DNA of 63,416 nt, the filler included, from Perkinsus chesapeaki ATCC PRA-425 (lineage: Eukaryota > Protista > Perkinsozoa): NCBI GenBank assembly GCA_013115145.1. It is 4 parts of 4 records of this genome, joined end to end, with 100 filler letters (N's around TTAATTAATTAA, not from the genome) between each part and the next. Parts side by side here need not be neighbours in the genome. Positions count along the whole stretch, not along the records: positions 31,820 to 60,273 come from JAAPAO010000471.1; 3 more parts are not named here. One strand, written 5' to 3'. This document shows positions 33,403-56,100 of this stretch, piece after piece. Position 1 is the stretch's first letter; every line of letters starts with the position of its first letter. Under the pieces are notes generated by a model that was not told where the DNA came from, did no database searches, and worked only from the letters and a program-made list of their open reading frames with translations. The translations under genes were made by a program, and so were the position numbers.

Positions 33403-34278
33403 TCACTCAGTGACTTTAGATTTCTTATGGATCCGATCCACTGCCTCGGCCACTCGCTTAACCATATCACTTCGTTCGGCAACAACCTTTCTCTCCGCTG
33501 ACGAAGGCCCAACGTCGAGACCGCCGGATTTGGCGAATTCCCGTATTTCCCAGGACACTCTTCGAACGGCGGTTTCGAGCTTCCTAGAACTCTTGTTGAC
33601 GCCGTCAATGTACTTCTCTCGATGAGTAGGAGATTCACAGCCGATTTCACGCGCCACGAAACTACAGATTCCATGAATCTTAATTTTAACGTTATCAGGC
33701 CGGCCGAAAAGATACGCGTTCCGCGAGGAACTAAAGGTGTACTTTTTATCGGCATAAAACTTCGCCACGTCCAGCAACCGCTCCCAGTTCTCGCCGATCT
33801 CAACGTCGATACCGTGCTCAGTGGCAGCCAGCTGGAGATCCCTCTCATATTTCCACAGAAAAGCCTCGCCTGCACTGGTTGGTTTGGCTTCGAAAGATTC
33901 ACAGGGAGCGTAAAGGGTACCAAGGCCGCGGACAACTTTGGAGCCGGAAACCTTATTAAGGTTGCTAGTAAAGTTGATGAAGTTAATTTCTTCTTTGTCG
34001 AATTCGTCGGTGGCGTCATCTCGACCTTGTACGTATCCTTCGCAACATTTCACATCGGAGATGACCTCGCCGCAATTAGTGCAAACATGCGTGGCCGTAT
34101 TGTGTTCGTATTCAACGAAGCTTATCGGATGCTTGCAGCACATAGCGCCGGAACCTCTATTAAGGGCGGGCCTGTCGTTTTGGAATGATAATATTGGCAG
34201 GGACAACGAAGGGGATTCAATCAACCTCTGGGGAATCTTTGGTATCTTGAAATCTTGCATTTCCTTAATGTAGCGCAT
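33403..34278 (-). CDS. Intronless protein with a TFIIB-type zinc ribbon (start may be Met at 34143)
   Basis: 291-aa ORF; MCCKHPISFVEYEHNTATHVCTNCGEVISD matches the TFIIB/BRF Zn-ribbon pattern C..(C/H)...VEYD...G..VC..CG.V. Confidence 0.7.
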   Translation of the reverse strand: MRYIKEMQDFKIPKIPQRLIESPSLSLPILSFQNDRPALNRGSGAMCCKHPISFVEYEHNTATHVCTNCGEVISDVKCCEGYVQGRDDATDEFDKEEINFINFTSNLNKVSGSKVVRGLGTLYAPCESFEAKPTSAGEAFLWKYERDLQLAATEHGIDVEIGENWERLLDVAKFYADKKYTFSSSRNAYLFGRPDNVKIKIHGICSFVAREIGCESPTHREKYIDGVNKSSRKLETAVRRVSWEIREFAKSGGLDVGPSSAERKVVAERSDMVKRVAEAVDRIHKKSKVTE

Positions 34279-34500: not shown

Positions 34501-35160
34501 ATGTCGGACGACCTTATTATTGTCCACGATACAGCATGTCTGGAATCGGCTTTCACCGTGAAGACCATCCATAAGAGCATGCTCAGCATCCTCGGCTTCA
34601 CTGTAAGGCTATCTAAACCACGCCTATCTAACTTAGCAATTTTGATACTAATGTTGGCTCAAGGTGGTAAACATGTAGTTGATTCAACGTATTCTTACCT
34701 TTTGCTAGCAACATCCGATCTCTCTTTCCCATCCATGGCTGAGGGATAATTAGCGTTCTTAAAAAGATTGTATCTGGTGGTTTTAGTTGATACAGCAAGT
34801 GCTTGTCTGGGGCGATTTCGGTCGATGTTTCAGGTCCAGGAGCCCAAGACCGATAAAGAGAACTATGTTGTGAAATCCCAGAACATCGGCTTTTTGATAT
34901 GTAAGTCAGTCTTTCCCGGTGGAGTGAGCTTTTTTCCAGGCGGTGCGGAGACTTTTAAAAATGAGGTTGTGGTCGATGCATTAAAGCAGGCCATTGAAGG
35001 GAAGAAAAATATTGTAATTGGCTTGTGTGGCGAAATTTTTTGAGATCTCTTGTAGGTCTTGCTGCATTGGATTTCGTCGTGCCCGAATATCGAGGAAGCG
35101 ATTCAAGTGGCTCCCGAGGCGTATAAGGAAGTTCTTGGTGGGAAAAAACAAATCATCTAT
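34501..35160 (+). CDS. TIR-like domain 1 of the dynein fusion (exons 1-4)
   Basis: [26 protein letters not shown]|[13 protein letters not shown]|[25 protein letters not shown]|VLLHW: TIR beta/alpha alternation. Confidence 0.6.
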
Positions 35161-38100
35161 GTAATACTTGATGGAAAAATTTTTGGAAAAATGGGAATTT
35201 TGCGGAAATTTTATGAGTAAGTATGTATGCTTGTTAATTTCAAGATATTCTTGTTGAAAGACCTACTCTATTTATGATTGATTTTTATGAATTTTATTGA
35301 TCGGGCACGATCGGGCACGCAAGCCATCGGTGTCGGTGGGATTTTTGAACTGGTATTAGATTGGGAAATCTTAAAATTTCCTGGGTGGATCGTCTTACTT
35401 CATCAGGTCGAAGACTTAATCAATGAGTGCAACGATAGTCTTCTGAATGTTCTGAAATTGGGCGACCAGGAGAGAGTTGAGCACGTTAGAGAAGTGCGAT
35501 CGAGACAGGCCATGGATGATATATTGAGATTTGGAGCGAAGGTGGTGACGTGGGACAGATTATCATTTCGGGGGAGTATTATCTCGTCTGAGGTCTGAGA
35601 CTCACGGTGTCGGTCGAGATTTGGGATTGCTCTCCGGGCTTCTCTGGTTCGGAAATTATGGGAACGTCGCTATTTCGTTTTTGGAGGGTGGAACTGAATG
35701 TAGCGGGCTCATTGTATTTGATCGTTTCAATTGTGACTAGCGAAGAGGAAGCGTTAAAAGTAAGATGGCATTAATAAATATGTAATGAGTGAAGTGATAT
35801 AGTGTCACGATAAGATACTCTGTATAATATAATAGTGCTGATATAGCTCATTACGTATAATGTAATACAGTGTCTTGAAACTTAATTTGTATTTTTTGAC
35901 GGTGGTTTATTCGCGTTAGAAGAACATGGCTTTTATATTTGCAAAATATGCAATCTGACGACGGGGTTTTTCTAGGCATTACCGCCAAAGGAGGTGTTAC
36001 CTCTAACGGTAGACCTTCCGGCTCATAAGTGTAATGAGAATATAAGTAGTGCAGTATAATAGTGTTAATATAGTTTATTATGTCTAGCTTAAGGAATATA
36101 GTATCTAGAAATTTAATTTGTATTTTTTGAGAGTGGTTAATTTCCGCAGGTATCTAAAGCTAGGATGAGATCGTCGGTTCGCAAAAGATATGATTTCTGC
36201 ATCACTTGTGCGAAACACATAATATCTGAGAAGGCACCGAGTATGGCGGAGCATCTTCATAAGTAACATTCGAGTTGGATTTGGTCGAGCAGCAGGATAG
36301 ATCTCTTTAGGCAATTCAACTCGTTGGCGCCAGCTCTGTCGGTGGCGCTCAATAACGGTGTGTCGTCTGGTTATAATAGCGTATCTGAAACGGCTCGGGT
36401 AAGGTGGGGTTACCTGGAAAGGCACTTGTTGATGTAAATGAACGTCCGTAACTATTTGGGCTTATTTCTCACCATTTTCTTTCGTTATCGGGCTCCATGG
36501 ATTCTTCCGTTGGAATCAGATCTTGTTATAGCCATAAAGAAGGGAAAGAATGCTGAAATCGGTTCCGCTTTGAAAAAAACGACCCAAAAATCATCGTTAA
36601 GTTGAACTTGAACTAACTGTCGAAACTCGGAAAAGTACTGTTGTTTCCGAAAAGCTTTCGCAGACTTGACAAATATAGCAGCTCCGAAACGGTTGCATAC
36701 TAAAGAACGAACAACTTGTGGTTAGGAGAAATGGCGCACCTCCCTTGGCTGGATTCTCTTGTCAGGTATCAAACGTGAGAGAGTCCTTCAATTTGGTCAT
36801 TCTTGTCACGGCTAACTGTTTTACCGATGAGCAACTTTGTGAAGAGGTCAGAGTTGCACTGGAGCAAGAGGTGAGTTTCGTGGCGCGTGAGAAAATTGTC
36901 ACCGAAGTGACCCGGCAGTGTTTGTCCGTTGATGAGAGATACCACCTATTGATTTGAACTCATTGAGAGGGAGATTGTAGAGAGTTGACGTTCATCGCTA
37001 CTGGTGTTACTCAAATCGTTGCCGGGCATAGAAATGCAAAGGTATACACAAACCTACTCAGTGATATGATTACTAGTGATTTCGATATACGAGTAGCAAA
37101 ACTGAGTTAGGCAGAGACGGTTACACAGATATGTGAGACGTATCTGGCGACACGCATGCGTTGTGTGCAGCGCGCCGGCGCAACGCACTATAAATATTAT
37201 CAAGATGTTGTGATTCTTAGATAATAAAGTCACTTGCATATCTTTAATAATGGCTACGGGCACCTCTAATAGGAGATCTAGAACGCCGGAAAGAATGTTG
37301 TATAAATGATAAAAATGCTAGCAGCGAGAAAAGTCATTTATCGGACTCTAGGATCTGTATTGGTTGGGAACTATAATTAACAATTATAATTCATTTGATT
37401 TGTTCGGATGTGGATGATGTTAATTAGGTCCATATTACGCTACTTCATGTGATAACTGATGCAACAGGAGGAGTTGAGGAAGAGCTGTTGCGTTGTGAAG
37501 ATTTGGTGCATAGAGATTGTCTTAGAAGGTAGACCAAAAGGCCTTGAGAATGCTTTACGGTTTTTCTATCAGATCTCCCACGTATTCTTATCTGCAAGAG
37601 CACGCCAGTGCAGCTGTCAGAAAACTGTTGTTGCCTGGTTTGGTGAAAATGGAGGAGAATAAGTCGCCGAGGTCGGTTGCAACTTGAAGGAAATGAGGAT
37701 ACTAATTTCGCGACAGGTCACGCGCAGCCGGGGTGCCGTCATTTCGGTTGGAATATAAAAACAGTAAAGCAATGGAGCTGCCGGGAGACGGTCGCATGGC
37801 GATGTAGGGTGCCGGGATCGAACCTGGGTGATTGGGTTTCGAGATCAGATATAAGCTGGCGAAGGAGGACTCTAAGAAGAATATTAGAGTGCCGTCGGAT
37901 ATCGATACGAATATAAAGTCTTTGTTTGAACTGTACGACACAGAAAGCAAAGGGGTGGTTGACTGGAATCAGTTTGTGAAGATCGATAGAGTGGGAAGAT
38001 ACGCGCTCGGAAATCTTTATAGTGCGCAATTGCAGGTCATCACGGAGACACTGGGAGGGCAATATAGTGAAATGATCAGTCGAAGAATTTACTCCCTTAT

Positions 38101-41100
38101 GCTGTAGGTTTTGATAAATCTGCGGAGGAGTCACGCGCCTCGCCTGTCAGGTATCCTGGCCTACCTCTGGACAGCGAGATTTCGTACACCACATTTTACA
38201 ACTATCATGCTTACGTATCAAAGAAAATGGGTAAGTTGAGAACGCGTTCTTTCTTTGTAGTGTGGAGAGATGGTGGAAATTTCATCATTTTTTCCGGAAA
38301 AATCGATGGAAATTTCGGAATGATTATCGAATGCACGTTTCCAGTCCAAGGAACTGTGAAATTCAGGAGGTTTTAGGTTAGAAAAGTTCCGAGGTCGGCT
38401 AGGGCTTCTCTGTCACTGGGAGAGATGCTGATGAAGATTTGTGAAAAAGTCGGTATGAAAGTTTGGATTTAGGTGTACTTGAAGGGGACAGAGATGTCGC
38501 CATTCATTACAAGTATTTGGTGGACAAGGCAAAGCATATGCGAAAAGGAAAACGATTCCAAAAAACGTAAGTTATATTCTTTTTCTTATGTCGCTTGTTT
38601 TTGTTGGTTTTCTCACTTCGCCGAGGTCTTTGGTGATGCGCTTATTCAGTTATCCGATTTCCTAGCGATTTTGGATTCGAGGAATGAAAAACGGCCAAAA
38701 ATATCAGAATCAAGTCACTTAGGACCACCAAAATTTCGCAGTTTTTTCCCTGATCTGCGCAACCACATTGCCGCCAGCAGTTTCCTATCTATACCGTTCT
38801 TCAGGTATGACTTGTTCATATGTCACGATCGCTCAAAAGAAGGCACTTCGATGGCTCTGGATCTGCTCAAGAGTATCCGAGATCACACGCCGAATGTAGG
38901 GAATGTCTTATAATGAAATTAAGATGTCATGATGAAACTAGTGTGATGAATCTTGGAATTGAAGAGTCTGCGAGAAAAAATTCTCATTTGGGGTCTTCCG
39001 GTTTTTTCGGCCAAATTTTTCCCCCAGGTCCGCACCATGCTTTGTATCGACGCTGTGGCTGAAAAAGAGAAAGAAAAGGATGCCAAGAAGAAGGATAACA
39101 AGAAGGATGGTGGAGGAGGAGGACCTCACAAGGGGGACCCTATGACTGGTGAGAAAATACGTTTTTTCAAGACGTATGATGTTTGAATGAAATCGATCGC
39201 GCGATCGATTTAGTCGTATGCCTGTATTTTTTGTTCTTCAGCTCCCAGCAAGAGCGCCGAGAGTTTGAATGTTGTCGTTATTTTGACTCCGAACGTTTTC
39301 GAGAATCCACAAGTCCAGAAGGACCTTCTCGAGGCCACCGAGGCTGGAAGCAGTATCGTGTTGCTCAGCGATGTCACCACAACTGCTGAGATGCTCAGTG
39401 AAATTAAGAAGGCGCCGGAAAATATCAAACCGGCTCTGTCAAGGTGAGGGGGAAAATTTGGTAATATTTTTCACTTTCCAAATTTTTCGTATTTTTTCCG
39501 TGGTCTGGATTTTCCGGCGGAAAATTATTTTCGCGAGTTCCCCCATCATTCTTCTGTAACTATTGGTTTTGGTGGATTTATCGAAGCGCGGGACGTAACG
39601 GCGGAGCAAATCGATTCTCAATTGAAGACGTCTTTTATGATTGCCACTTTCAGACCTAATTGTGTAGCCTACTGGAAGCACTGTGATGCTGCATGTTCGG
39701 TGGATCTCTTAAGTCTGCTCACCTTCCCGGACTGGAGGCCCCAGGCGGCAAGATCGACTATTCTGGCGGTGCAGGGTTTTAGTCCGTTGGTGAGATATTT
39801 GTTCCAGAATTGTGACGAGGATGAGGAGGTGAGACTGGTCCAGCAGCAGCAGAGTTGTAGGGGTGTAGACTGTAAGGAGTTTGAAACGTGCCAGTGGCAA
39901 AAAGAATCTAGTGAGAAGTACGAAGTGTTTACGGAACGAGTTTGAACAACTAGTATCGGAGTTGTTCTTACGCTTTGAGTATCGTCCTTCAATCCTGCCG
40001 AGCTTGGCTCTCGCCGCCGAATAACGATTATTTTTTGCGTCTCTAATGCAGGAGAGTCGATACTTTTGCCCTCCTTGCCCAGTATTCAGCTTTTCACGTC
40101 TTCTATTTCGATTTTTCATATGGGAAATTATATTAATGCGAATAGGTTTTTATTCATGGCTCACAGTTTCCCAGCGCGATTCCCATCCCCCACTTCTTCC
40201 TTGAGATTCACTGTGTTTTCAGACCGCTATTGCTTTCCGGTGCTTGGCCAACTGCACAAGCCCGTCCACTCTAAATGGCGCCAGAGTCAGAAAATCGTTT
40301 GCTCGCGAAGGTGGCATCGACATCCTCGCCGAGAAGTTCCAGCAGTTCATGAGCGTGCCGGCCGTGGCGGAGAACGCCTGCCGAGCGGTGGCCAATTTGG
40401 CGCAAGATGTTGAGATTTGTCGGAAGCTTGCCGAGGCGCGAGTAGTTAATATGGTGGTGGAATGCATGAGCAGTCATACGGATGCGGCACTGCTACAGGT
40501 GAGTTACGGGGATTTAGTAGTTGCCCTTGGATGAGGGACGGGAGAGTCCAAAGGTTTGAATAATAGTGAATTGGTGTAATTAAACGTAGTCGAGTCGCTG
40601 GTGTAGAAATACCGCTTTTATACGTGTAGGAAATTAGTCGATCAAGACTGACGATTTCAGCCAGAAAGGGCCGAGGTTTTTATGAGATGTCTTCGTGGCG
40701 AGAAGTAAAAGATATTTCGTAAAATCCCGAAAATTTCGTGGATCTGGTATTTTCGTGTGAGATTTTCCCGTAGAGTTTGTTTGGCAGTCTGTCGGGACGC
40801 ACGAGATTGAGACAATTCTCTCGCATAGCCTACCGCGTCGGTATATATAAGGATGTTGGGTTCAGGGGGAAGCGTCACGCGCCCTGAATAACTTGGGCCA
40901 AGAGGAGGTTGCCAAGCTTCGCATCACAGAGTTGTCCGGATTCCAAGCCGTCTTGCAAAGTCAGAAAAAGTTCGAATACGAACCTGAGTTCTGGGATGGA
41001 CGGTAGGCGTGAAAAGGAAAAACTGATAAACAAAAAACGTTTCGCTCCGCCTTTTCAGGTTTGCTATGAAGCGCTTGAAGGTTGACGATGTGGTGATGGT

Positions 41101-44100
41101 GAACTACCGCGGTAAGGGAAGATGGTGCAGCGGCAAAGTCCAGGAAAGTTACGCTAATGGGACGTATGATATTACCTATGCACACGGTGGAATGGACAAG
41201 AAGGTGCCGGCGCACTGGGTTAGGCCGAAGGATGAAAGCGATGCTGTGATGGAATTATGTGGCGTGTGGGAATGGAAACCGACGGGGAAGGTTACGGAGG
41301 ACGAGCTGATATTGAAGGCGGACGGGATGTGCAGTCTTCGATCGGGTGCTGTGGGTACGTGGAATCTTGCGCAGCCGAAAGAAGGAAGAACTCGAACTGC
41401 TATTAAGTTGAATATAGGGAAGAGTATGATCGAAATGGAGAGGATATCCTTGACGACTTTGAGGAGCACGACAACGAGCGAACGGGCGCTGCTGAAAAAT
41501 GAGTTTCCGGAGTGTGTGTATACGGAGTACTTTGGATTCGGTGATGTTAGTGTCGGAGAGAGAATGCCGAGCTTGACGGCGTTGAGGCCAGATCATGTTT
41601 GTGTGGAGCAGGAGATCTGCAAGAGCGTCGATGGCTGGGCGCATTTGCCGGAAAAACTGCGGCAAAATGTTGCGGTGCGATGGTCAGGATTTTTGGTGGT
41701 GGGGAAGATGGGCAAGTATACATTCACGTTAGATAGCGGCGGACCGTCGTTGGTATTTGTTAACGATAAATTGGTGGTCGAAAATACGGAGGAAAATTCT
41801 AGCGGAGCGATGCAGTTGATGCCAGGAAATCACAGGATAGACGCCCAGTAAGTGGAATTTCAGGGCGCGCTGATTCGCAGGATCGGATTGCTACGGTTAT
41901 GTTACTTGTACAAGATGGCTGATGGACTTTCTGGACAGCAGAAACGCCCTCAGCTGTTTGCTTTATCAGATTCTTCTCGGCATCGGAAGGTCCTCAAAGC
42001 TACTTGAATCTACTCTATTCCGGTCCCGATACGGGGGATGAGCAGATGAAGGTGCCAGCGGCGGTCCTGCAGCATTCGGTTGAGCAATCGGAGGTAAGGA
42101 GGGCAGAAAATATTACTCTGTGCGAATGATAACGACAGTACGTGGAAAGGCAATCTACGTGGGTTTAATCTTTTTGAGGACCTATTCCCTGACCAGCTTG
42201 AAGTAAAAGTGCGGTATATTAATAAAGTCTCGTTGCGAACGGGATCTGCATCTGCAGGCTGTAAGAGTTAGCTGCGTTCTTGTACTGTAAGTTGTCCATT
42301 AGCCTTGTGCAAGGGACAACTTATAGTCCACAGGAAGTGAGATACAACCGGATGCCCTGCATGCGTCCACAGTTCTGTACGCACGCCCTTTGTTTATGCG
42401 TGTAAGGGGTAGTAACCCGACATAAGTCTCCACACATTGGTGTGAGAGGTAGGTATTGTCTACTCATCTCGACTCTTAATCTCAAGACTTCCCTTGCGTT
42501 ACTTTGGTAACGGGGCAACCAAAAAATGGTAGAAATGATGGTATCATTTTCGGGTCCATTCTTCTTGCCTGCCACAGCCTCGAAAGGCGTTTCTGAATGG
42601 TGTGGCTTATTGTGCACCTCATCAGGTAGCATACACGTTTGGTTGGAAAAGCGCTCTTACGTTCCAACCTTTTGCATGTGTCTGTCGTATGTCTGATTTT
42701 TTCTATGAAGATGCTCGAAATTCGATCATCTATTTCCGGGGTTTCAGGTTGTCAAGAAACCCGGGTTTCTGGGAGAGTACTTTTCTGAGGATCTTGGCGG
42801 TCGAATTCCCGAAGGAAAGTACCCTGATGTTGTCCGGGTCGAGAAGCAGCTGGATTTCGAGGCGACCTCGGAGGCTTGGGAGAATCTTCCAGCGCGGTTC
42901 AGTAAATCCTTCGCAGCGCGTTTCACGACGTATCTTAGCTTGAAGTGCGGAGGAAGGAAAAAAGCGAAGTAGGCGAAATCGGCTCTCGGTTATTCCGATA
43001 CTTCGATTTAGGTATTCGTTTGCTGTCGACTCCAACAAATGCGCGAAGGTCTACCTGGATGGCAAACTCGTCATTGAAGAGGACGCTTCTTTCGAGGTGG
43101 AGTTGTCCTCTGGTCCACACAAAATGCAGGTTGAGTATTTTTGTGGCGCGTCGGAGGCAGCTCACGCGCTGACGCTCAAGTTTTCGGGACCGGAAACGAT
43201 TCCGCCGGGAACCGAGGACGATTCGGAAACGGCCAAGAATCCACCGATGGTCAGCTTGCCAGCCGAAATTTGCTCTTACTATCTTCGACCGACCGTCGCG
43301 CTCCCTCGTGGTGACCCTCTCGAAGCTCACGAGAAGTCGGTGCCATTTGTTGGGTGCAGTGATGAGGTGACGATGGTGTCTGCGGGCGCTGATGGGAAAA
43401 TCTGCGTCTGGGATTTGCCAACTTCTGCGGTGAAATCGACGATCGATGTCGGGCAACCGATCACCTGTGGGCGACTGAGCGCATCCGGAAGATTCCTCGC
43501 AGTTGGTTTGGAGGACGGCAGCATTTCGCAGTGGGAAGTGGCGTCGGCTAGGCAGCACGGGAGCCCGATGTTTGGCCACAGTGGCGAGGTGAACTCGGTT
43601 ACGTATTGCGCCGAGGATAAGAAAATATTGTCGGTCGGACACGATTTGTCTGTTCGAATTTGGGAGGCAGAAAGTTGCGAAGAGCTGGCGAATCTGGCGG
43701 CCAATCCTCACAATCGGATCGGTGATGCGATCGAACAGTCGTGGGCGGATTGCTCGGCGGCTTATGATGACAAGATGGTGGTCACCGGAGGGAAGGACGG
43801 CTGCATTCGATTCTGGGATACGGAAAAATTGGACACCTTGCGAGGACCGGAGAAGGTGATGCCGTTGCCTGAGGAGCCTGAAGATGGATGGGGTGAAGAG
43901 GGCCCGCCGGAGCCGGAGAGGATTCCGGGCGAACCGATACTGATCGAAGGTAGACTGGGGATTTCGTGCTTACTATTGCTTCAGAAGTCTCTGCTGTTTC
44001 ATAATGTTGAGGCTCTCTAGTAATACAGTAATTATATTTGAGAGCAGCATATGATTACCGGCCGTTGTTCTCTACTCTCATTTCCCCCCCCCATCTTGGG

Positions 44101-47100
44101 ACCTCTGTGACACTGCCTGTGAATATCAACATTCTGTCGAAAAGGCCGGTGGATGCTATATAATACAGGTTCAGAAAATAAACCAGAACTTTCCTAAAGT
44201 GTGCAGGACAATTTTCATTATCGATATCGCATCGGGGCGAGGTGCATTCGTGCGATTGTCGTTCATTCGGGGATCTTCGCTTTCTCTTTCAGGCCACCCC
44301 CACAAGAGGGTCACCTGCGTAGCTCTGTGTCCAGTGAAAGGCAGTAACCTTCTGGCAACTGCGAGCTCGGACGCTACCATTAAGATTTGGGATTTGAAGG
44401 ACCACTCTCTGCACATAAAGCCGATACAGTGTCTCAGCAATGTCGTGGTAAGCATTGAAACGAAGAAATGGAAGTCGCTGGGGAGGCTCTAGCTCGTGCG
44501 GCATTTTAGAGTTGGTCACCGAATGGAGCCACGCTTGTGTCGGCGAATGAGGACGTGCTCGTGCAGCTGTTTAGTGCAGTTTCGGGGAAGCCTAGATCGG
44601 AGCCGATGCCAGGGTGAGCCCGCGGGGGTCTGGAGAGGGCTGTGGTGATGGTGGCTGGGCATCAGGCACATCGCGTCGATGAGGATGGCAGCATGGACAC
44701 CTCAAGGGCAGTGCTTGGCGACCTGCAGTGACGACGGAACGATCAGACTGTGGCATTTTACAGTCAACCGGAACATCGCCGAGATCGCTGTTCTTGAGGG
44801 GGAGGAGGGAGTCTTCCAGGAAGACATGAAAAAGTGGCAGAAGGTGAGAAGGCACTGGAAGCTCCTGTCCCGTGCAAGAGTTGGTATTTATTTCTATTAT
44901 TTTCGAAGCCCGTCAGCAGTCGAAGAGCTGCAAACTGTGGTGCTTCGGTTGAGGCTCCTCGAGAGGCTAATTTGCTTCTCTCGCGCACCACTTCATCTCG
45001 CGCGAGCTACGCAAAGTTGGAACGTTTTTTGCCATAGACGACTTGTGGTTCGACTTTTAATTGCCCTTAGGACGCGCCTTGTGTGTGAGCAATTGATTGG
45101 TGCCACTCGCATCGGTTTTAGACCTTCCGATCGAGCTGATACTGCCCACGCAGGAGTGAAACTAGCAGGGTCGGATTAAACATAGTTGCCGGAAATATAA
45201 CTTTTGATAGCCTAGTCGATTGCACCGCTGATCGGCATAAATCTTTGTGATTAGATTCTGGATCACATCCGTCACGAATGTCATGACTACAGTAAAGGAG
45301 CTTCGGAATACGAAAAGAATGTGGAGTACTTACGGGCCTCCCTGGACAAGGGAGTTGATCTGGTGAAGTCATACCGAGCTCGAGCGTCACTCTTGGGGCT
45401 CACCCCGACGGACTACTGGGACCTTGATGGTATGATCGATGACTATGCCAGTTATTACAAGTAAGCAGGCGGAGCGAAGCGATTTTTGTTGTGCATTTTT
45501 CGAGTGTAGATTGTGGAATACGGTAATAAGCTTCCAGAAGAGCCAGATTAAGTGGCAGCAAGATCCGATGAAATCCATCAACGCTGAGCAGGTGGAGCAA
45601 CTCCTCGATTCTTGGTTCAAGGAATGTTACAAAATGATCAAAGGCTTTGATAACAACAACACGAGGATGGTGAGCGGGAAAAACGAGGAAAAAAATTTTT
45701 GATTCTGGCTCGGTTTTTGTAATGGTGAAGTTTTCCAAGTCGACGTTTCTTCGCCTTATGTTTGCGAAATAGTTCACTTTCAAAAACGCAATGACTACCG
45801 TATAACAAAGAGTAGGACGATCGAAGGACACATCGCTCTTGCCGGTTCAAGAGGCCCCGCGTAGCTTCATGAAAAAGTGCGTGATGAATTTTTTCTTTCA
45901 ATAATTCTCAGGCGCAAAAAGTGGCTAAGGACTTGAAGTCTGGCATCGACGAGTTCAGGGTGAAGTTCCCGTTTTTGAGGGCCTTCTGCGTCGAGGCTAT
46001 CCTTCCGCGTCATTGGGACGAGCTATTCGCGAAAATGAAGATCCAGCCGTTTGCGGACTACAACGACATTCGAATGCAGCAAATGTTGGACAAGGGCGTC
46101 CTCAATTTTGCAGAAAGTTTCGAGGAGATCTCGGCCGCAGCGCAAAAGGAGCACTCGTTGAAGAAGGCCATGGCCGGCATGAAGCGCGACTGGGAGCCTT
46201 TGGAGTTCACCACAACACTCTACAAGGAAACGGGCTGCCCCATTCTGAAGGGCATCGATGAGATTCAGGCGGTCTTGGACGACCACATTGTCAAGACGCA
46301 AGCTATTCGGTCGTCTCCGTTCTGCAAGCCTTTCGAGCAGGAAGTGCTCGAGTGGGAGGCGACTTTGCTTTATTTGCAAGATTTTGTGGACGAGTGTTTG
46401 GCAGTGCAACGGACCTGGATGCAGCTGGAGCCGATCTTCCTGTCGGATGATATCAAGCGTCAATTGCCAGATGAGAGCAGCGGATTTGCGACGATTGATG
46501 TTACGTTCCGATCGAGGATGAAGCAAGTCGAGGGAAGTCCAGGCTGTCTGGGAGTTGCGGCTGCGGGGGGAATTGTGGAGGACTTCAAGGACGCCAATGA
46601 GAAGTTGGAGAAGATCCAAAAGGGATTGAAGGACTATCTTGAAACTAAAAGACTTTACTTCCCAAGGTGAGTCTGTTGGAAAAATTCCCCATTTCTGGAT
46701 GAGTAATAATACTGCAGCAGCTCCAGTGGGGCTTCACGGTCGTCCATGAGGATTCATTGATCCTTTTCCAGCGTATTCTTCGAACTAATGAGGGGTCCTA
46801 TCTTTCTATATTGTTGCAATTACTTCCTCTCTCTCGCCTGAGTAAACGTTCAGCGTTACTCCCGGCTGCTATCAGATTCTTCTTCCTCAACGATGCCGAT
46901 TTGCTGTCTATCCTGGCCGAGACTAAGGACCCGACACTTGTCCAGCCACACATGGGCAAAGCGTTCGAAGGCATCGCCTCGGTCCGGTTTAACGAAACTG
47001 CCACCATCATTAATGCGATGATCAGCGCCGAAGGAGAGAGCGTAGATTTCGTTAACAATGTCGATGTTGACTGTCCTGAAAATAAAGGAAATGTCGAGAA

Positions 47101-50100
47101 GTGGTTGGTGGAGGTGGAAAAGGCGATGATTGATTCCCTGACAAATGTGATATCAAGGAGCAACAAGGATTATGCATGCAAGCCTCGAACGGCCTGGTGC
47201 ATCGACTACCCGGGGCAGGTGGTGCTGGCAACCGATTGCATTTATTGGACTAAAGAAGTAACGGAGGCCCTCAATGGGAAGAGAGTTGCCGACTACGAGA
47301 AAAAGTTGAATCAGCAATTGCTGGATATTGTACAGCTTGTCCGAGGGGATCTTTCCAAGCTTGCCAGAGTCACGTTGGGTGCGATGGTCACCATTGACGT
47401 CCACGCTAGAGATGTCGTGAGCGATCTTGTTAAGAATAACGTCGAGTCTGCGGACGAGTTTGATTGGCTTAGTCAACTGCGGTACTATTGGAAGGAGCCT
47501 AATAGCTTTAAAAGGCTTGATACTGGTGAGATGAATGGCAAGGAGGAGTGTCAAGTCTCCATTGTGAATTCAACTCTGCTGTACGGATTCGAGTATCTCG
47601 GTAACACGCCGAGGCTCGTCATCACACCTCTGACGGATCGGTGCTATCGAACTTTGATGGGCGCGTTCGCACTGTATTATGGTGGAGCACCAGAAGGACC
47701 GGCTGGAACAGGGAAGACCGAGTCGACTAAGGATCTGGCGAAGGCGTTGGCGATACAGTGTGTGGTCTTCAACTGCTCTGATGGTATGGACTATATGCAG
47801 ATGGCTAAGTTCTTTAAAGGTAGGATCATTGATAATTTCAGAGAAGTTGAGGAATTAGTATTTTTCGAAAACCGCTATCAAGTAGATAAGAGGGACCCTT
47901 GACTTAAGGGCCCTGAGTGTATTTCCTAAAATGCAATTGTGAGAGACTTGGTATAATGAAAACTAGCTCGCAAAAAAACCGATGAACAAAAGGACAACTG
48001 CAGGCTTGTTGTTTTTCTGATGGAGTGGCGTGCAGGTCTGGCAAGTTCCGGTGCTTGGTGCTGCTTTGATGAGTTCAATCGTATCAACTTGGAGGTGCTG
48101 TCCGTCATTGCCCAGCAAATCCAGTGTATTTCGCTGGCCATCAAACAAAAGGCAAAAACCTTTATTTTCGAGGGTACAGAGATCAGGTGGGCATCATCTG
48201 CTCTGTGACCGCTGCGCCACGAAATTATGTCAGGCTTATTCCGTCGTGTGCTGTGAACATCACCATGAACCCGGGGTATGCTGGTCGATCGGAGCTGCCG
48301 GACAACCTGAAGGCTCTGTTCCGTCCATGCGCGATGATGGTTCCAAATTACGCATTGATTGCCGAAATCACCCTCTACTCATTTGGGTGAGTGATTTGGG
48401 GAAAGTGTGGTATGAAAGAACCGGGGGATGTTATCGGTCATTCGGCCTCGGGGCTGCTCTCTTTTCAAACGTTTTAAGCTCTAAGCCTCTCTCGGGGCCG
48501 GCTACATCTGTTCTACTTGCTTACTCGCAGCTTGAATTTGGTACTGTATGGTCGATGAGGGAGTGTCTTGTTCGGGTTGAAGAAGTTTTTGAATTCTCGA
48601 AAAACTAGTGAAACGCAATCTACAAATACCTGTTAATATCTTCTTCATTTCCGACCATAATAATTTAAAGGTCGTAGATCATTCAAGAAGTGAGATGGGA
48701 ATTCTGCGGGCCGCGTCAACGTTTTCAGCATCGTATTGCTTTCACCAGGTACGAGGATGCCAGGCGTATCGGCGTGAAGGCCACCCAAGCGTTGAAGCTT
48801 TCGTCTGAGCAGCTCTCCGCTCAGGATCACTACGACTTTGGTATGCGTGGTTTGAAGTCTCTTCTGGTGGCCGCAGGAGCGCTGAAAATGAAATACGGCG
48901 ACCAGTATCCAGAGGACGTCATTTCGTTGCGAGCATTCACGGACGTTAATTTGCCCAAGTTCACGAGCGCTGATATCCCCCTCTTCAAAGGCATCATCGG
49001 TGACTTGTTTCCGGGGGTGCATCTGCCACCGAGCGACTATGGCCCTCTTATCGCACAGGCAAGGTTTGGGGATAAGGTGCCTTAGCTGTATTTGATGCAT
49101 ATTTCCTTTTAATAAATCATTTAGCATATATACTAGTCTACCTGCTGAGGAAAGAACCTTCTGAGGGAAAACTCCGGCGGCTCTTCGCGATTAGTAGAGG
49201 ACCGACTAGAGGCTCGATTGGCTGTTCAACGTTTGGAATTGAGTGACGAACGGGTCGTCGTTGTTTTTAATGTTTTGGCATTTTCCTTTACATTTGGCTG
49301 ATATCATTTTCGCCTAGCCACTTGCGTTGCCGCTAGGAAGGAACGTATCTTTTATGTAGCGAGGTTGAAGCGCGCAAGATGCACCGAAAGTCAACTTTTT
49401 ATTGTCTCAGGTAGAGGCATGTGCAGTTGCTAAGAAACTTCAACCGACGAACGAGTTCACGAATAAAGTTATTCAGCTCTGGGAGACTGTCATGGTCCGT
49501 CACGGTCTCATGACTGTCGGACTGCCACCGTGCGGTAAGATGGCCTTCGAATGCGTGAAATTGAGGAGTTACGAACTTCTTCGAGGAAATACTTTGCTGG
49601 TGGGAAGATTTATTAATAGTGCGGAGGAGATATGATAGAAAATATGTTTATATTTTGCGAAACGAAAAAAGGGTAAATAGTGGAGGGTAGACTGTTAGTC
49701 TAGAGAGTCTAGTTTCGGAGAGGAACTCGCTGAGATGTGATTCTATCTACTCTTCAACTTTACTGATATTGAAATATTAATGCGAAATTAAATTGGAATT
49801 TGGCAGGTAAGACAATGGTGAAGGACGTCCTCGCGGACACGCTCGCTGCTGTTGCTGACGGTGGTGACATGTTCATGCCGGTCACTCAACACATTATGAA
49901 TCCAAAATCGATCACACAAGGGCAACTTTACGGCGAGGCCGATCTGAATACGCAAGAGTGGACGGACGGCGTTCTCGCTATAGCGGTGCGCGCGGCGAGC
50001 AAAGGGCCGCCAGACACGCGTCAGTGGGTCGTTCTGGACGGACCGGTCGACGCCATTTGGATTGAAAATATGAACACCGTGCTGGATGATAATAAAAAGC

Positions 50101-53100
50101 TTTGTTTGAACTCCGGTGAAATTATCAAACTTTCAGCAACCACTACGATGATTTTCGAAGTGCGTGATCTGGCGGTGGCGTCTCCGGCGACGGTTTCACG
50201 GTGCGGCATGGTCTTCATGGAGCCGGATTCGGACCTGGGATGGAAGCCGATCGTGCTGTCTTGGCTCGACTATCAGATTCCTGACTATATCAGAAAAGAG
50301 CATCGCGATCTGCTCTGGAAATTATTTGAAAATAATTTTGAGATTTGCCTCGAGTGCACGCATAGGGTTCGAACCCCAGTCGCTGTGATTGACAATTGGC
50401 TGGCGGACAGCGCGTGCAGGTTGATGGAATGCCTTTTCGAAGACTCTGAGGAGCGTTACTGCCGACCGACTACGAGCGACGATGATGAGCATTCTCAGAG
50501 CGCTGCGGACCGGGAGCAACTAATCTATGCCGTATTCTTCTTCGCAATGTTGTGGACATGTGGAGCGTGCACGGACCAGGAGGGACGAGCCTTTGTGGAG
50601 TCAGTCATCCGGGCGATGTTTGAGAATAAGAAGGAATTTATCAAAAAGCAGGATTTCGTGACGCAGTGGGAAATGACGGAGCTCGTCAGCGGGCTGTCGC
50701 CAGCACCGCTGCCGAGCAAGGGACTGCTGCACGACTATTTCATCGATTCGGCCGATGGAGGAAAGTGGAAACCGTGGACGGAAAAAATAGGGAATTTCGA
50801 CGTTCCCAAGGACGCTCAATTCCACACTATTATTGTGCCCACCAGCGATACCGTCCGGAACCAGTTTTTGATCAGGACGTTGATCGAGAAGGGGAAGCAT
50901 GTGCTGATGTCGGGGGTGACGGGAACAGGCAAAACGGTGTCGATTGCGGGCATGCTTTTGAACGGATTTGACAAGGAAAAATATTCGACGATTTCCTTTG
51001 CGTTTTCGGCGCAAACTACGGCGAACCAGACGCAGGATATTATCGATGGGAAATTGGACAAAAGACGGAAGGGCGTTTTCGGTCCGCCGATCAACAAAAA
51101 AATGCTTGTGTTTGTGGACGATGTCAACATGCCGGCAAAGGAGACCTATGGCGCTCAGCCACCAATCGAAATTCTGAGGCAAGGATTGACAATGAGTGGT
51201 TGGTATGATAGGAAGACGTGGGAGTTCAGACAGTTTGTCGATATGCAGTATCTGGCAGCGATGGGACCGCCAGGGGGAGGGAAGAACGATATCACTGATA
51301 GATACTCGAGACAGTTCAACCTTATATTCGTCACACCATTCGATGATGAATCTCTGGCGAGAATTTTCACAACGATGGTTCAAAAGTTCCTTGGGGTGAT
51401 GCCTCGGGAAGTGGCGGCGAATGCTCCTACGGTGGTGGCCGCGACTATAGAGGTTTACAATACGATGTCGGCGGAGATGTTACCAACTCCGGCGAAGTCG
51501 CATTACACTTTCAATCTGAGAGATCTCAGTAAAGTGTTCCAGGGCATTTGCCAGTGTACGAGGGAGAGCTTGCCCAAGGTGGGTCAATTGGCGAAGGATA
51601 TTTGAAATCTGTAAATGACGTTTGTGAGGTCTCTCCTACTCGCCGTCGGAATATCTCTCTCATCAAACTAGGGTACATTCTGCGCCATCTCTCAGTCGAA
51701 TCCGTCGCCGAACGATCTCTTTTCAAGCAATTTGGAAATCCGTTTTCTGAAGATATTTGTTTTTAGGCGGAAAAATCTTCCGGATTCCTTTACGTCGAAT
51801 CTTGGTGTAGTTTGCTCCCCTCATCACCGTGTGTGGGCGAGGATGCGCCTTCATCCCGACGCTGTCACTTGTCAATCCTCGCACTTGCAAAATATGCGAT
51901 TGTCTCATGGTAAATTGGTCACTTTTGTCAGGTAGACGATCTTGCAAAATGTTGGATGCATGAGTGTCAGAGAGTCTTCGAGGACCGTTTGGTTAACAAG
52001 CCCGATCACAACTGGTTCTTCTTCCTCATAAAACGCCTCCTCGATCGCCACTTTAAAAAACAATATGACCAAGTTGTAAAACAGGAGCCGATCGTCTTTG
52101 CGAGTTTTGTCGACCCGAAGTCGACAAGCTATATGGAAGTGCAGGACCACCAAAAGTTGCAGGAAAAAATGACGACGTGTTTGGAGGACTTCAACGCAGT
52201 TTCGAAGATTCGAATGGATCTTGTCCTCTTTACGGCGTTCATACAGCACATTTGCCGCGTTGTGAGGGTAAGTTGTCACGCGCCAGGAAATTATCAAATT
52301 TATAAAAACGAATTTTCCCGTGGAAAAATCGGTTCTGGTGTTAAGCAGGAAGTTTTCTTTCTTCAATATCTTAGGTCGAAGCGCGAGAAATTGGTACAAG
52401 TGCCTGGTGGTCGAATCTTTAGCATTTTAGGTCCTCAAGCTTCCGCTTGGTAACGCTTTATGTGTTGGTGTTGGTGGAAGTGGACGAAAAAGCACTGCGA
52501 CACTGGCGGCGTTCGTGGCCGACTTCAACCTGTTCCAAGTGCAGATCTCGAAATCGTACGGGATGACCGAGTGGCGAGACGATATGAGGAAGCTGCTTAT
52601 GTCTGCCGGGTGCGATGACAAAAATATGGTGTTCCTTTTCCCGGACACGCAAATTGCCAATGAGAACTTCCTTGAGGATGTCAGCAGCATGCTTAATACT
52701 GGTGAAGTGCCGAATTTGTATGCCAATGAGGACAGAATGGAAATTCTGGAGAAGTGCAGCAAGATGGCGAGTGCTGATGGCAAGACCGGACCGAATGAGG
52801 TCTTTGCTTGGTGAGTCAGTGGCTGCCTAGGTTGATTAGTGCAGCAGCGACTGGGGAAAGATTCCTGGCGTTTATGTCGTGAGGATTCATTATTTTTCAT
52901 GACTAGTACCCGTGAGAAAATTTGTGATGAAATTTCGGGTCGATCGGAAAAAATTTCCGGAAAAGTTTCCAGTAAAAAAATTCCGGAAAAGTTTTCAGTG
53001 AAAAATTTCCGGAAAAGTTTTCAGTAAAAAATTTCCGGAAAAGTTTTCAGTGAAAAATTTCCGGAAAAGTTTTCAGTAAAAAAATTTCCGGTGTATACAA

Positions 53101-56100
53101 ATTACCTGGGGGCATTTTACGTAACTTCCTAGTGTTGTTCAGGTACGTCGAGAACTGCCGTAAGAATCTTCATATCGTCTTGGCCATGAGCCCCATCGGT
53201 GACAAATTCCGAAAGCGTCTCCGTATGTTCCCGAGTCTTGTGAACTGTTGCACAATCGATTGGTAAGCAACCGCGCTCGGGCTTGAATTTTCGAATCGAA
53301 GCGTTGGCCTCTATCCAGCTGGCCAATACAATCACGAGGGACTGGATTCTGCGAAAAATGATTTTAGTAGTCTTGGTATTAGTTCCATTTCGAGGAGAAG
53401 ATATCGCGTAGCTAGTGCATGCTTGAAGCTAAGATACTTGTCGGTGCACAACGCTGTGATTTACTCAGGTTCATGGAGTGGCCGCCGGATGCCCTCACTG
53501 CTGTGGCGATGCAGTTCCTGAAGACGCAGGAGATGCCCGAGAATGTGTTAAACGGTGTGGTGAAGATTATGGTGGATATGCAGACATCGGTATCGACATT
53601 AACGGAGAGATTCCTATCCGAGCTCCGGCGGTAAGATAGGTCCACGGGTTCATAGAGCTCCGCGGAAATGGGTTTTTCAAAGCGCGCTTCGAGCTTAGAT
53701 TCGCAACGGCACAAGTGTTCCTTCTGGAAATAACATCTCTCGTTCTTCCGTGCTTTTGCATAGGACTGGTACCACCTTTCAGACATTACTATGTCACACC
53801 GACCTCTTATTTGGAGCTAATCAATTCGTTCATACAAATGCTCAAGCAACAACGACACGTCGTCTCCCAAGCCAAGTGGCGCTATGACGTGGGCCTTGAA
53901 AAATTGGCGGACACGGCGAGCCAAGTGGCGACCATGCAAAAGGAACTTGAGGACCTTCAACCTAATCTGGAGAAGGCGGCGAAGGAGACCAGTGAGATGA
54001 TGATTCTGGTGGAAAAGCAGCAGGGGGAGGCGGCCGAGAAACAGAAGCTGGTCGACGCTGAAGCGGCTGCTGCGAACGAGCAGGCGCGAGCTGCCGAGGA
54101 AATTGCTGCAGACTGCCAGAAGGACTTGGCCGCTGCAATGCCGGCCTTGGAGGCTGCTGTGGACGCGCTGAGCAAGCTGAGCAAGGGAGATATCACTGAG
54201 GTTAAAGCGATGAAGACGCCACCTGGTAGGGTAGGGAGCTTTAGTCGGCTCGCATCTCTATTCGGGAAGTCTGGTTTCAATCATTGAATCGGATCATCTT
54301 ACAAATCGATTGCATTCCGCGATGACAGATCAGATCGTACGTCGCGAATCTGTTGCAACTATTATAGGGTACCCCAAAAAATGCGTTTTTCCAACTTTTC
54401 AAGAAAGGCGAATATTTTGTCGACACCAAAAGTTCGTCGAAAAAGCACATCTTCTTGGGGACACCCTGTGGGATTTTTTTGTTAATATTCAAGGAGGTTT
54501 CAGATGGTGATGAATGTTTTAATCTAACCTCACTTCCCTGAGATAGGCTGATTGGTTATCGTAGTCATGCCGGGCACTGGGGACTCGCATCTCGGGTTTT
54601 GCCCCTATGGTCACTTCTTGCTCAGGTGGTGTCGTACTGGTGGCCCAGGCTCTGTGCTACTTCTTCGGCGTGAAGCCTAATAAAGTACCGGCGCCAGATG
54701 GAAAGGGAAAAGTGGACGATTTCTGGGAGCCTGCGAAAAAGGAGCTTCTTGGTGATCCGAGATTGCTCGATCGGCTCATCAATTTTGACAAGGACAATAT
54801 TTCGGAAGAGGCGATGAAAAAAGTGAACATATTTTTTGCCGGGCAAAGTTCATCACAATTTTCAGGTTAAACCGCTCTACGACGATCCAAACTTCGAGCC
54901 CGAGGTGATCAAAAAGGCGTCAATCGCTGCAATGGGTATCTGCAAATGGGCACGTGCAATGGTGGTGTATGACAAAGTCGCGAAGGAAGTCGGCCCTAAG
55001 AGAGCAGCGCTCGCACAAGCCGAGGGAAAGGCCGCCGCGGCGAAGGCTAAACTGGCTGAGAAGGAGGCCGAATTGGCTGAAGTGATCGCGCTGGTCGATA
55101 AGTTGGTGTCGGATTTGAACAATGCGAAGGAGTATATGGAGGAGTTGCAGAAGCAGAGAGACGATTGTGCTGCAAAGCTTATCAGGTCGGGGGTTCGATC
55201 CCGTCCTGGGGCTTTTATTTCTGCTTTTTGCTCGTTTGTTTGGAATGGGGCGCTGCTTATTGTCGAGGCATTCAAAATTTGCAGAATTGGAGAGCGAACA
55301 GCCGGTGGTCGCGAGGACAAAGCGACTGTCTGTTTTCCAGGGCCGAAAAGCTCATCACTGGTTTGGGTGGTGAGAAGTCGAGATGGACTGCTGCCTCGAA
55401 CAGACTTGGCACCGATTACAACAATCTTTCCGGCGACATTCTCATCGCAAGTGGGATCATCGCCTACCTTGGTAAGAGGGAACTCTTTGCGCAAACTGGT
55501 GGGAATTAATCGACCAATTACAATATTTTCGAAATATGTGCATAGCCGACCGCATTCGGTTAAAAAGTCGAAAGCGAAGTTGGGCCGAAGCAAACGGGCT
55601 TCGGCTGAACTTTTGTTGAGTTCCGGTCGGTTTATAGAGCTCATAGAGCGTGCTTCTGGGACGGTGTGGTTTGGAAATTGTAGAGCTTGAATGAGGGAGG
55701 GTAATAGATAGTCGAACACTAGTCGTAGAATCTTTTACTTCCTGGAATATCCGTTAGAAATCGGAATGTATTCCTTTTGTCGGGTGAGGGACGTATCTCC
55801 TATTTGGTATGGGCTTGAGGATCCCTCCCCCATCGATGAGATGGCGAGATATCAGACTCTTAGGTGTTTTCACGGCCTCCTATAGAAGTGATGTGATGGA
55901 AAAGTGGCTCGGCCGGCTACAGGATTTGAAGATTCCTGCAAGCCCTCAATTTAGCTTACAAGCTTGCATTGGCGACGCGGTGAAGATCCGGCAATGGTAG
56001 GTTTGGGAGGCGCTGTGTGGATGGAGGGCTTCATTAGGGTCATCGACAAACTGCCTAATGATTCGCTCTCGATCGACAACGCTATCATTTTGAGCAACTC

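Follow-up and report, generated by a model that had tools for sequence, protein, structure and literature searches.

Every tested TIR domain with NAD+ glycohydrolase (NADase) activity needs the glutamate of helix alpha-C, and TIR domains need self-association (PMC7282519). In addition, the serine that ends strand beta-A (S567 in SARM1) contacts this catalytic glutamate and is required for full activity (preprint 10.1101/2025.04.09.647920). SARM1 has the order ARM-SAM-SAM-TIR, and divergent TIR-like domains that can be found by sensitive comparison only, the TeTIR domains, have been described in the large multidomain TEP1/NWD proteins, which carry WD40 repeats (2026 preprint). Among dyneins, a survey of ~3,000 sequences found the canonical tail in every new class and, with a single exception, in the orphan dyneins, makes no mention of TIR or PA14, and includes class-10 dyneins, whose heavy chain is fused to a WD40 propeller (Kollmar 2016, PMC5100056). 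Here, we describe a locus of Perkinsus chesapeaki ATCC PRA-425 (GenBank assembly GCA_013115145.1) at which three TIR-like units precede a dynein heavy chain on the + strand. The window is the whole stretch of DNA, 63,416 nucleotides with filler included, and the piece that we analyzed spans its positions 31820-60273 (JAAPAO010000471.1).

An earlier note made from this sequence alone had proposed three tandem TIR-like domains (hereafter T1, T2, and T3), of which only T2 keeps the putative NADase glutamate, followed by ARM repeats as in SARM1 and physically tied to a flagellar motor. Our analysis leads us, with moderate confidence, to a somewhat different explanation, namely a divergent TIR-fold array with a scaffold or docking role on a dynein with a swapped tail. 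More specifically, three tandem and very divergent TIR-fold domains, together with an EF-hand-like segment, would make up the N terminus of a giant dynein heavy chain in this alveolate. Its canonical DHC_N1 tail would have been replaced by the three TIR-like units, ARM repeats, a Tudor-like domain, two PA14 domains, and a WD40 propeller, joined directly to an inner-arm-type linker, and the TIR-like units would serve as self-association or docking modules that take over the assembly job of the lost tail. Such a dynein heavy chain, its usual tail exchanged for one that begins with divergent TIR-like domains, would be a new version of known kinds. The features are as follows.

34501-35160, + strand: putative TIR-like unit 1 (T1), exons 34501-34602, 34834-34900, 34940-35013, and 35056-35137 (or to 35160); splice sites read and modelled.
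36150-37041, + strand: probable TIR-like unit 2 (T2), exons 36150-36262, 36311-36398, 36766-36870, and 36985 (or 36970)-37041; splice sites read and modelled.
37849-37990, + strand: EF-hand-like exon between T2 and T3 (Pfam EF-hand_6 E 8.5e-4, EF-hand_1 E 3.2e-3, both under the curated cut-offs).
38805-39828, + strand: TIR-like unit 3 (T3), four exons with borders backed by Perkinsus olseni contig L005, namely 38805-38895 (beta-A/alpha-A, YDLFICH), 39028-39148 (beta-B and a Lys/Glu/Gly-rich insert), 39242-39443 (beta-C to alpha-D), and 39654-39828 (beta-E/alpha-E and a linker).
40223-41002, + strand: Armadillo-type repeats, exons 40223-40498 and 40866-41002 (Pfam ARM_ARMC5 E 1.5e-9), collinear with the relatives P0011, P0030, and P0050.
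41059-43300, + strand: Tudor/Agenet-like domain of ~55 aa, then two PA14 domains (Pfam PA14 E 5e-9); relatives are given below.
43300-44843, + strand: WD40 beta-propeller (Pfam WD40 and several beta-propeller families).
45255-60273, + strand: dynein heavy chain with DHC_N2 linker, AAA1-AAA6, stalk, and C-terminal domain (Pfam); the gene is truncated where the piece ends.

An open reading frame (ORF) scan and three-frame reading of the piece revealed no long ORF over the region of the three units. The segments are short exons of 20-66 aa with GT..AG borders, and we therefore read the region as an intron-rich eukaryotic gene on the + strand; a bacterial reading was rejected, given the lack of a long ORF and the presence of GT..AG introns. 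Exons were chained with an ab initio model for which the long dynein exons of this piece served as training data. The resulting chain comprises ~2,100 codons between the ATG at 34501 and the dynein linker and a further ~2,800 up to the cut end, so that ~4,900 residues were modelled before the piece ends. Intron lengths in this model range from ~37 to ~540 nt and are shorter in the motor part than in the T1/T2 region. All TIR tests reported below were made on pieces, exon by exon.

The three segments that the earlier note had equated with helix alpha-C were located on the + strand at 34963-34992, 36829-36858, and 39307-39336, and the T2 glutamate codon is GAG at 36844-36846, the second Glu of its segment. 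The by-eye alignment was reproduced independently by MAFFT and Smith-Waterman, both of which place Ala of T1 (34978-34980), Glu of T2 (36844-36846), and Asp of T3 (GAC, 39322-39324) in one column. The third exons of T3 and T2 match each other with a Smith-Waterman Z of 8.1, a score reached by 0 of 500 shuffles, and T1 gives a collinear match to T2/T3 in three exons (shuffle p 0.036, 0.014, and 0.016, chosen from 14 pairs tested). As judged from these alignments, the three units are true repeats, with T1 the weakest member. The proposal of three tandem TIR-like units, which are homologous to each other, finds support here, with the T2/T3 comparison (Z 8.1) carrying the homology and language-model, profile, and structure comparisons carrying the likeness to TIR.

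The language-model comparison placed TIR_2 in 16 of the 30 nearest named clusters of T3 exon 3 (best 0.93/0.91), and the named families around T2 exon 3 (35 aa) were all TIR_2, TIR, or ThsB_TIR (best 0.88/0.87). For profile comparison we used a reference set (A7) of 40 aligned bacterial domains fetched by the motif D-x-FISHASEDK, 39 of which match Pfam TIR_2/TIR. With hhalign, T3 exon 1 fell on columns 2-8 of this profile with a score of 29.9 and, collinear with it, T3 exon 3 on columns 53-76 with a score of 19.5; none of 120 shuffles reached either value. A profile of the three first exons (A5) was placed on columns 1-22 (P 1.3e-4), and T2 exon 1 was placed, weakly, on columns 2-24, since 11 of 120 shuffles reached its score (p about 0.09). 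The aspartate of T3 aligns with Glu75 in the W-x-x-x-E motif of the reference profile; this nearly invariant residue occupies the column of SARM1 E642, and the T2 glutamate comes to the same column through the T2/T3 alignment. Because hhalign puts the T3 Asp on this nearly invariant Glu column, we take the Ala/Glu/Asp pattern to be right.

Structure comparison points in the same direction. An AlphaFold (AF2) model of T3 exon 3 (66 aa) has a predicted local distance difference test (pLDDT) score of 78.6 and forms strand-helix-strand-helix, covering beta-C to alpha-D only. In a Foldseek search of this model, PDB ranks 1-4 were SARM1 TIR (TMq 0.55-0.63, 19-22% identity; no E below 0.35), and SNC1, TIR-1, RPPT, and AtTIR were also within the top 50. 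When the corresponding P. olseni fragment was modelled, 8 of 10 family sets in an ESM-Atlas shape search were TIR, TIR_2, or ThsB_TIR; against SARM1 TIR the fragment gave Z 3.8 at 26% identity, with phosphatases of the HAD family ranking higher (VIA). T3 is very probably a TIR-fold domain. T2 would be TIR-like by its homology to T3 and its own language-model result, and T1, with no direct TIR match, may be counted as TIR-like through its weaker homology to T2/T3. We infer the complete TIR fold of the units from evidence on part of the domain.

Downstream of T3, Pfam matches on the same strand follow in the order ARM, Tudor/Agenet-like, PA14 twice, WD40, DHC_N2, AAA modules, stalk, and Dynein_C. 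The motor matches are strong (DHC_N2 4e-80, AAA_6, AAA_7 3e-76, AAA_5, MT, AAA_lid_11, and Dynein_C 2e-73), such that the linker, AAA ring, microtubule-binding stalk, and C-terminal domain of a dynein heavy chain are all present (Pfam E 4e-80 to 1e-10), and the AAA1 P-loop, GPAGTGKT at ~47711, is intact. The best PDB matches of the motor are DNAH7, DNAH12, DNAH1, DNAH3, DNAH6, and Chlamydomonas inner-arm chains (E to 3e-154), and we accordingly class it, on sequence grounds, as a predicted single-headed inner-arm dynein type. The canonical tail by which inner-arm chains dock on the doublet microtubule is missing, as no DHC_N1 was found by Pfam in any segment scanned; the WD40 propeller ends ~100-150 modelled residues before the linker, and the sequence upstream of 34501 holds a minus-strand ORF.

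We compared the T3 region with other sources. Among the matches obtained, the closest is the P. olseni hypothetical protein KAF4743801.1 (117 aa), which is 78% identical to the segment with the main exon of T3. On P. olseni contig L005, conservation begins and ends exactly at acceptor 39028, donor 39148, acceptor 39242, donor 39443, and acceptor 39654, with exons 64-69% identical and introns about 33%. Between the two species, nonsynonymous differences in T3 (pN 0.05-0.15) lie far below synonymous ones, which are saturated (pS 0.68-1.0), and T3 is therefore under purifying selection.

The link between T3 and the motor can be followed in a second lineage. The relative P0011 (45% identical) is a 930-aa ORF on the intron-free contig L001 of a JGI sample, which is probably a transcript, and the exons after T3 are collinear with it. 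The first ORF of L001 holds a T3 tail, ARM, two PA14, and WD40, and an overlapping second ORF holds WD40 and then DHC_N2; the fusion from tail to dynein linker is therefore present on a contig free of introns and extends to a second lineage. The connection between a TIR domain and dynein that the earlier note had suggested is thus real for T3, as this one contig carries the T3 tail, ARM, PA14, WD40, and dynein linker. P0011 and P0012 have two PA14 stretches each, and P0063 has a weak Agenet match. Since the ARM/Tudor-like/PA14 segment occurs in at least three other distant sources, two of which start in the T3 tail, the arrangement is no assembly accident.

Further fragments with a T3 tail, ARM, Tudor, and PA14 were noted in L002 (a 1449-nt contig of NCBI GCA_035284945.1, intron-free over 479 aa) and L003 (Logan SRR18278878). 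Atlas neighbors are labelled haptophyte, and the family may therefore extend beyond Perkinsus. An exhaustive search with the PA14 exon among 1.8 billion representatives returned fragments only and no full-length annotated protein of this architecture; its other top matches were unrelated proteins with many Tudor-like repeats. Homologue searches with residues 1-110 of P0011 and with the T2 segment returned the query itself or nothing, a tblastn comparison of the T3 exons with plasmids gave no match, and two metagenome scans gave none either.

Given that TIR domains work by self-association and that the motor has lost its oligomerising and anchoring tail, an assembly role suggests itself, and a scaffold or docking role of the TIR-like array appears the most likely.

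Several findings weigh against this overall explanation, and they concern the fold, the gene model, and the proposed role. No exon or stop-free segment has a Pfam TIR match, even at E up to 10. Searches of PDB sequences by phmmer and by profile, for which T3 exon 3 and the profiles of exons 1 and 3 served as queries, returned chance matches only, and exon-wise hmmsearch against a bacterial TIR hidden Markov model (HMM) gave at most 7.4 bits. The fold matches are statistically weak (Foldseek E of at least 0.26, VIA Z of at most 5) and come from half a domain without beta-A, and the match of T3 exon 1 amounts to a motif of 7 residues that matches the one by which the reference set was fetched. 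The alpha-C tryptophan of W-x-x-x-E is missing in all three units (Gln, Gln, and Val), T2 exon 3 alone was not aligned by hhalign to the expected TIR profile columns, and a homologue search with the T2 segment found no T2 orthologue. Only the ab initio exon chain, which includes doubtful micro-exons, connects T1 and T2 with T3, and RNA was found neither by looking for runs that contain the stretch nor in two small runs of the species label. In addition, the scaffold role is drawn from domain position only.

The findings on the fold bear most directly on the view that the units are generic three-layer alpha/beta repeats, flavodoxin- or HAD-like, whose TIR-like motifs arose by convergence. This view draws on the missing Pfam, HMMER, and PDB sequence matches, on Foldseek E values that are all above 0.2, and on a VIA-align list that is led by HAD phosphatases at Z 5.0, with SARM1 at Z 3.8. 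Four independent kinds of test nevertheless favor TIR, that is, the language model on two exons, collinear hhalign placement with scores above all shuffles, SARM1 at PDB ranks 1-4, and 8 of 10 family sets in the Atlas, and we regard a non-TIR fold as improbable.

The findings on the gene model raise a more serious possibility, which we rate as the strongest competitor although still fairly unlikely. T1 and/or T2, the latter with the EF-hand exon, might be one or two separate small genes, with the dynein gene starting near T3. The join depends on weak micro-exons (e.g., 37221-37228 and 38377-38393), and the T2 frame would stop at ~37108 if donor 37041 were not used; T2 exon 4, however, splices in phase directly to 37428 without micro-exons. 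A tandem duplication of ~230 nt between T1 and T2, and introns longer than those of the motor part, would suit separate genes, and Perkinsus mRNAs are trans-spliced, which makes close gene packing possible. On the other hand, all units lie on the same strand with no opposite-strand gene between them, coding potential runs on without a break after 34501, and the three units are paralogous, as expected of a single repeat array. We infer that T1 and T2 belong to the same transcript as T3, and the divergent TIR-fold array on a tail-swapped dynein remains our preferred explanation.

At the position of the beta-A serine, T1 has Val (DDLIIVH), T2 has Thr (ACT, 36204-36206; YDFCITC), and T3 has Cys (YDLFICH), so that the conserved serine of TIR NADases is present in no unit and a hydroxyl is kept in T2 only. 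Likewise, the catalytic glutamate of TIR NADases is found in T2 only. T1 lacks both markers (Ala, Val) and T3 has conservative replacements (Asp, Cys), and T2 would be the sole unit in which both markers are usable (Glu and Thr), which extends the point made by the earlier note. As T2 alone keeps a plausible Glu/Thr pair, it is the sole candidate for NAD+ cleavage in this genome. The catalytic position of T3 is Asp in P. olseni and P0030 and Glu in P0011, and the pattern is therefore not fixed across the family; this, like the missing tryptophan of the motif, speaks against catalysis. The claim that only the second TIR keeps the glutamate accordingly holds within this genome, with Ala in T1 and Asp in T3, and fails across the family, given the Glu in T3 of P0011.

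These residues bring up the view taken in the earlier note, in which T2 is an active NAD+ glycohydrolase or cyclase flanked by T1 and T3 as scaffolds, with NAD+ cleavage or signalling of the cyclic ADP-ribose (cADPR) type in a flagellar motor. In favor of such an enzyme, T2 alone has Glu on the catalytic column, and it alone has a hydroxyl (Thr 36204-36206) in place of the serine by which SARM1 and plant TIRs contact this Glu. Tandem TIRs could moreover provide the TIR-TIR contacts required for activity (PMC7282519), and the TeTIR preprint indicates that NADase activity is possible even in highly divergent TIR-like domains that escape standard models. However, the alpha-C tryptophan is missing, the TIR fold of T2, its BB-loop region included, is only putative, and the first exon of T2 is weakly placed (p about 0.09), while its third exon alone did not align to the expected columns. 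No T2 orthologue was found that would show conservation of the Glu, many Glu-bearing TIRs are not known enzymes, and T2 is only a presumed part of the motor transcript. We therefore hold an active T2 to be unlikely. A version in which T2 is activated by TIR-TIR packing when motors cluster, with NAD+ depletion or a cADPR-type signal at dynein or along microtubules, seems slightly less likely again; it would link TIR signalling with a cytoskeletal motor in a way not described so far.

The likeness to SARM1 and TIR-1 consists in the best solved-structure matches of the T3 half-domain (SARM1 TIR, 19-26% identity), an acid on the alpha-C column of E642, and an ARM-repeat segment in the same protein. 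In contrast to SARM1, which has one TIR domain at the C terminus, three TIR-like units stand here N-terminal to the ARM segment; furthermore, no SAM was detected, the ARM is of ARMC5 type, the W-x-x-x-E tryptophan is missing, and a dynein motor is fused. No segment scanned with Pfam contains a SAM domain, and the ARM exon matches ARMC5-type ARM, with no SARM1 match. The comparison of the ARM repeats with those of SARM1 in the earlier note therefore does not stand, as the TIR-like units precede the ARM segment, SAM is undetected, and the exon is of ARMC5 type. Likeness to SARM1 is only partial, and an orthologue of SARM1 was rejected given the missing SAM domain and the reversed domain order.

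The array resembles the bacterial YDVFISHASEDK-type TIR_2 NADase domains and the ThsB-type TIRs in that beta-A (YDLFICH, YDFCITC) and beta-C/alpha-C fall on the right profile columns, and TIR_2/ThsB_TIR clusters are the closest by language-model features and by shape. Unlike these domains, whose Ser and Glu are both replaced to some degree here (Ser by Thr, Cys, or Val; Glu kept in T2 only), the units have similarity below the reach of HMMER, and in T3 a long Lys/Glu/Gly-rich insert takes the place of the BB-loop/alpha-B region. The TeTIR domains are likewise divergent and TIR-like, found by sensitive comparison only, part of a large WD40 multidomain protein, and judged catalytic from the presence of Glu; they differ in having 200-350 residues with extra elements and in standing before a NACHT ATPase, whereas no NACHT was found here, and the likeness is one by description.

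With the single-headed inner-arm dyneins (DNAH7/12/3, DNAH1, DNAH6, and Chlamydomonas IDA), the motor shares the linker, AAA1-6, stalk, and C-terminal domain; unlike them, it has no DHC_N1 and carries ~2,000 residues of unrelated domains instead. The class-10 dyneins of Kollmar 2016 (PMC5100056) also combine a heavy chain with a WD40 propeller, but theirs is C-terminal and accompanied by a canonical N-terminal tail, whereas here the propeller is N-terminal, directly before the linker.

If true, an inner-arm-type motor with TIR-like, ARM, Tudor-like, PA14, and WD40 domains in place of its tail would represent a new mode of dynein attachment or regulation. In TIR research, it would provide a eukaryotic context that is neither an immune receptor nor SARM1, together with a natural residue series for TIR catalysis (Ala/Val, Glu/Thr, and Asp/Cys). 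Species of Perkinsus parasitize oysters and clams and have flagellated zoospores, and we hypothesize that the protein may bear on zoospore motility.

Several observations were made on the individual domains. The EF-hand-like exon (37849-37990) has strong coding potential and a loop that is degenerate at ligand positions 5 and 12; with the usual ligands missing there, it may not bind calcium. The insert of T3 in place of the BB-loop/alpha-B (39058-39140) is Lys/Glu-rich and of low complexity with a Gly5 run, and the P. olseni version is shorter, with two small deletions. The Tudor/Agenet-like domain lies at 41100-41270 (residues 15-70 of exon 41059-41847) and matches hundreds of proteins with 5-35 copies, some above 7,000 aa, which dominated the search of representatives. 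In the local copy of PDB entry 9fqr, several chain names look mismatched; a 4,069-aa dynein-like chain, for instance, is labelled 'putative malate dehydrogenase 1B', and the best match of the ARM exon in this entry is labelled 'CFAP251', a name that is not to be trusted.

Other observations concern the gene layout. The interior of T1 includes two candidate introns, of 39 nt (34901-34939) and 42 nt (35014-35055), the former being in frame and stop-free, such that it could be retained coding sequence; in T2, a 13-aa micro-exon of the model (36682-36720) is doubtful. Many introns of the motor part (45.9-60.3 kb) measure 45-55 nt. The duplication in the non-coding stretch between T1 and T2 comprises 35801-35911 and 36028-36142, with two blocks 71% and 85% identical, and its second copy stops a few bases short of the T2 exon 1 acceptor. 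The ATG at 34501 is the first of its open frame; 222 nt separate it from the start of a divergent ORF on the minus strand (33403-34278, 291 aa) that has a weak TFIIB-type zinc-ribbon match (E 0.005), a spacing that suggests a shared promoter region.

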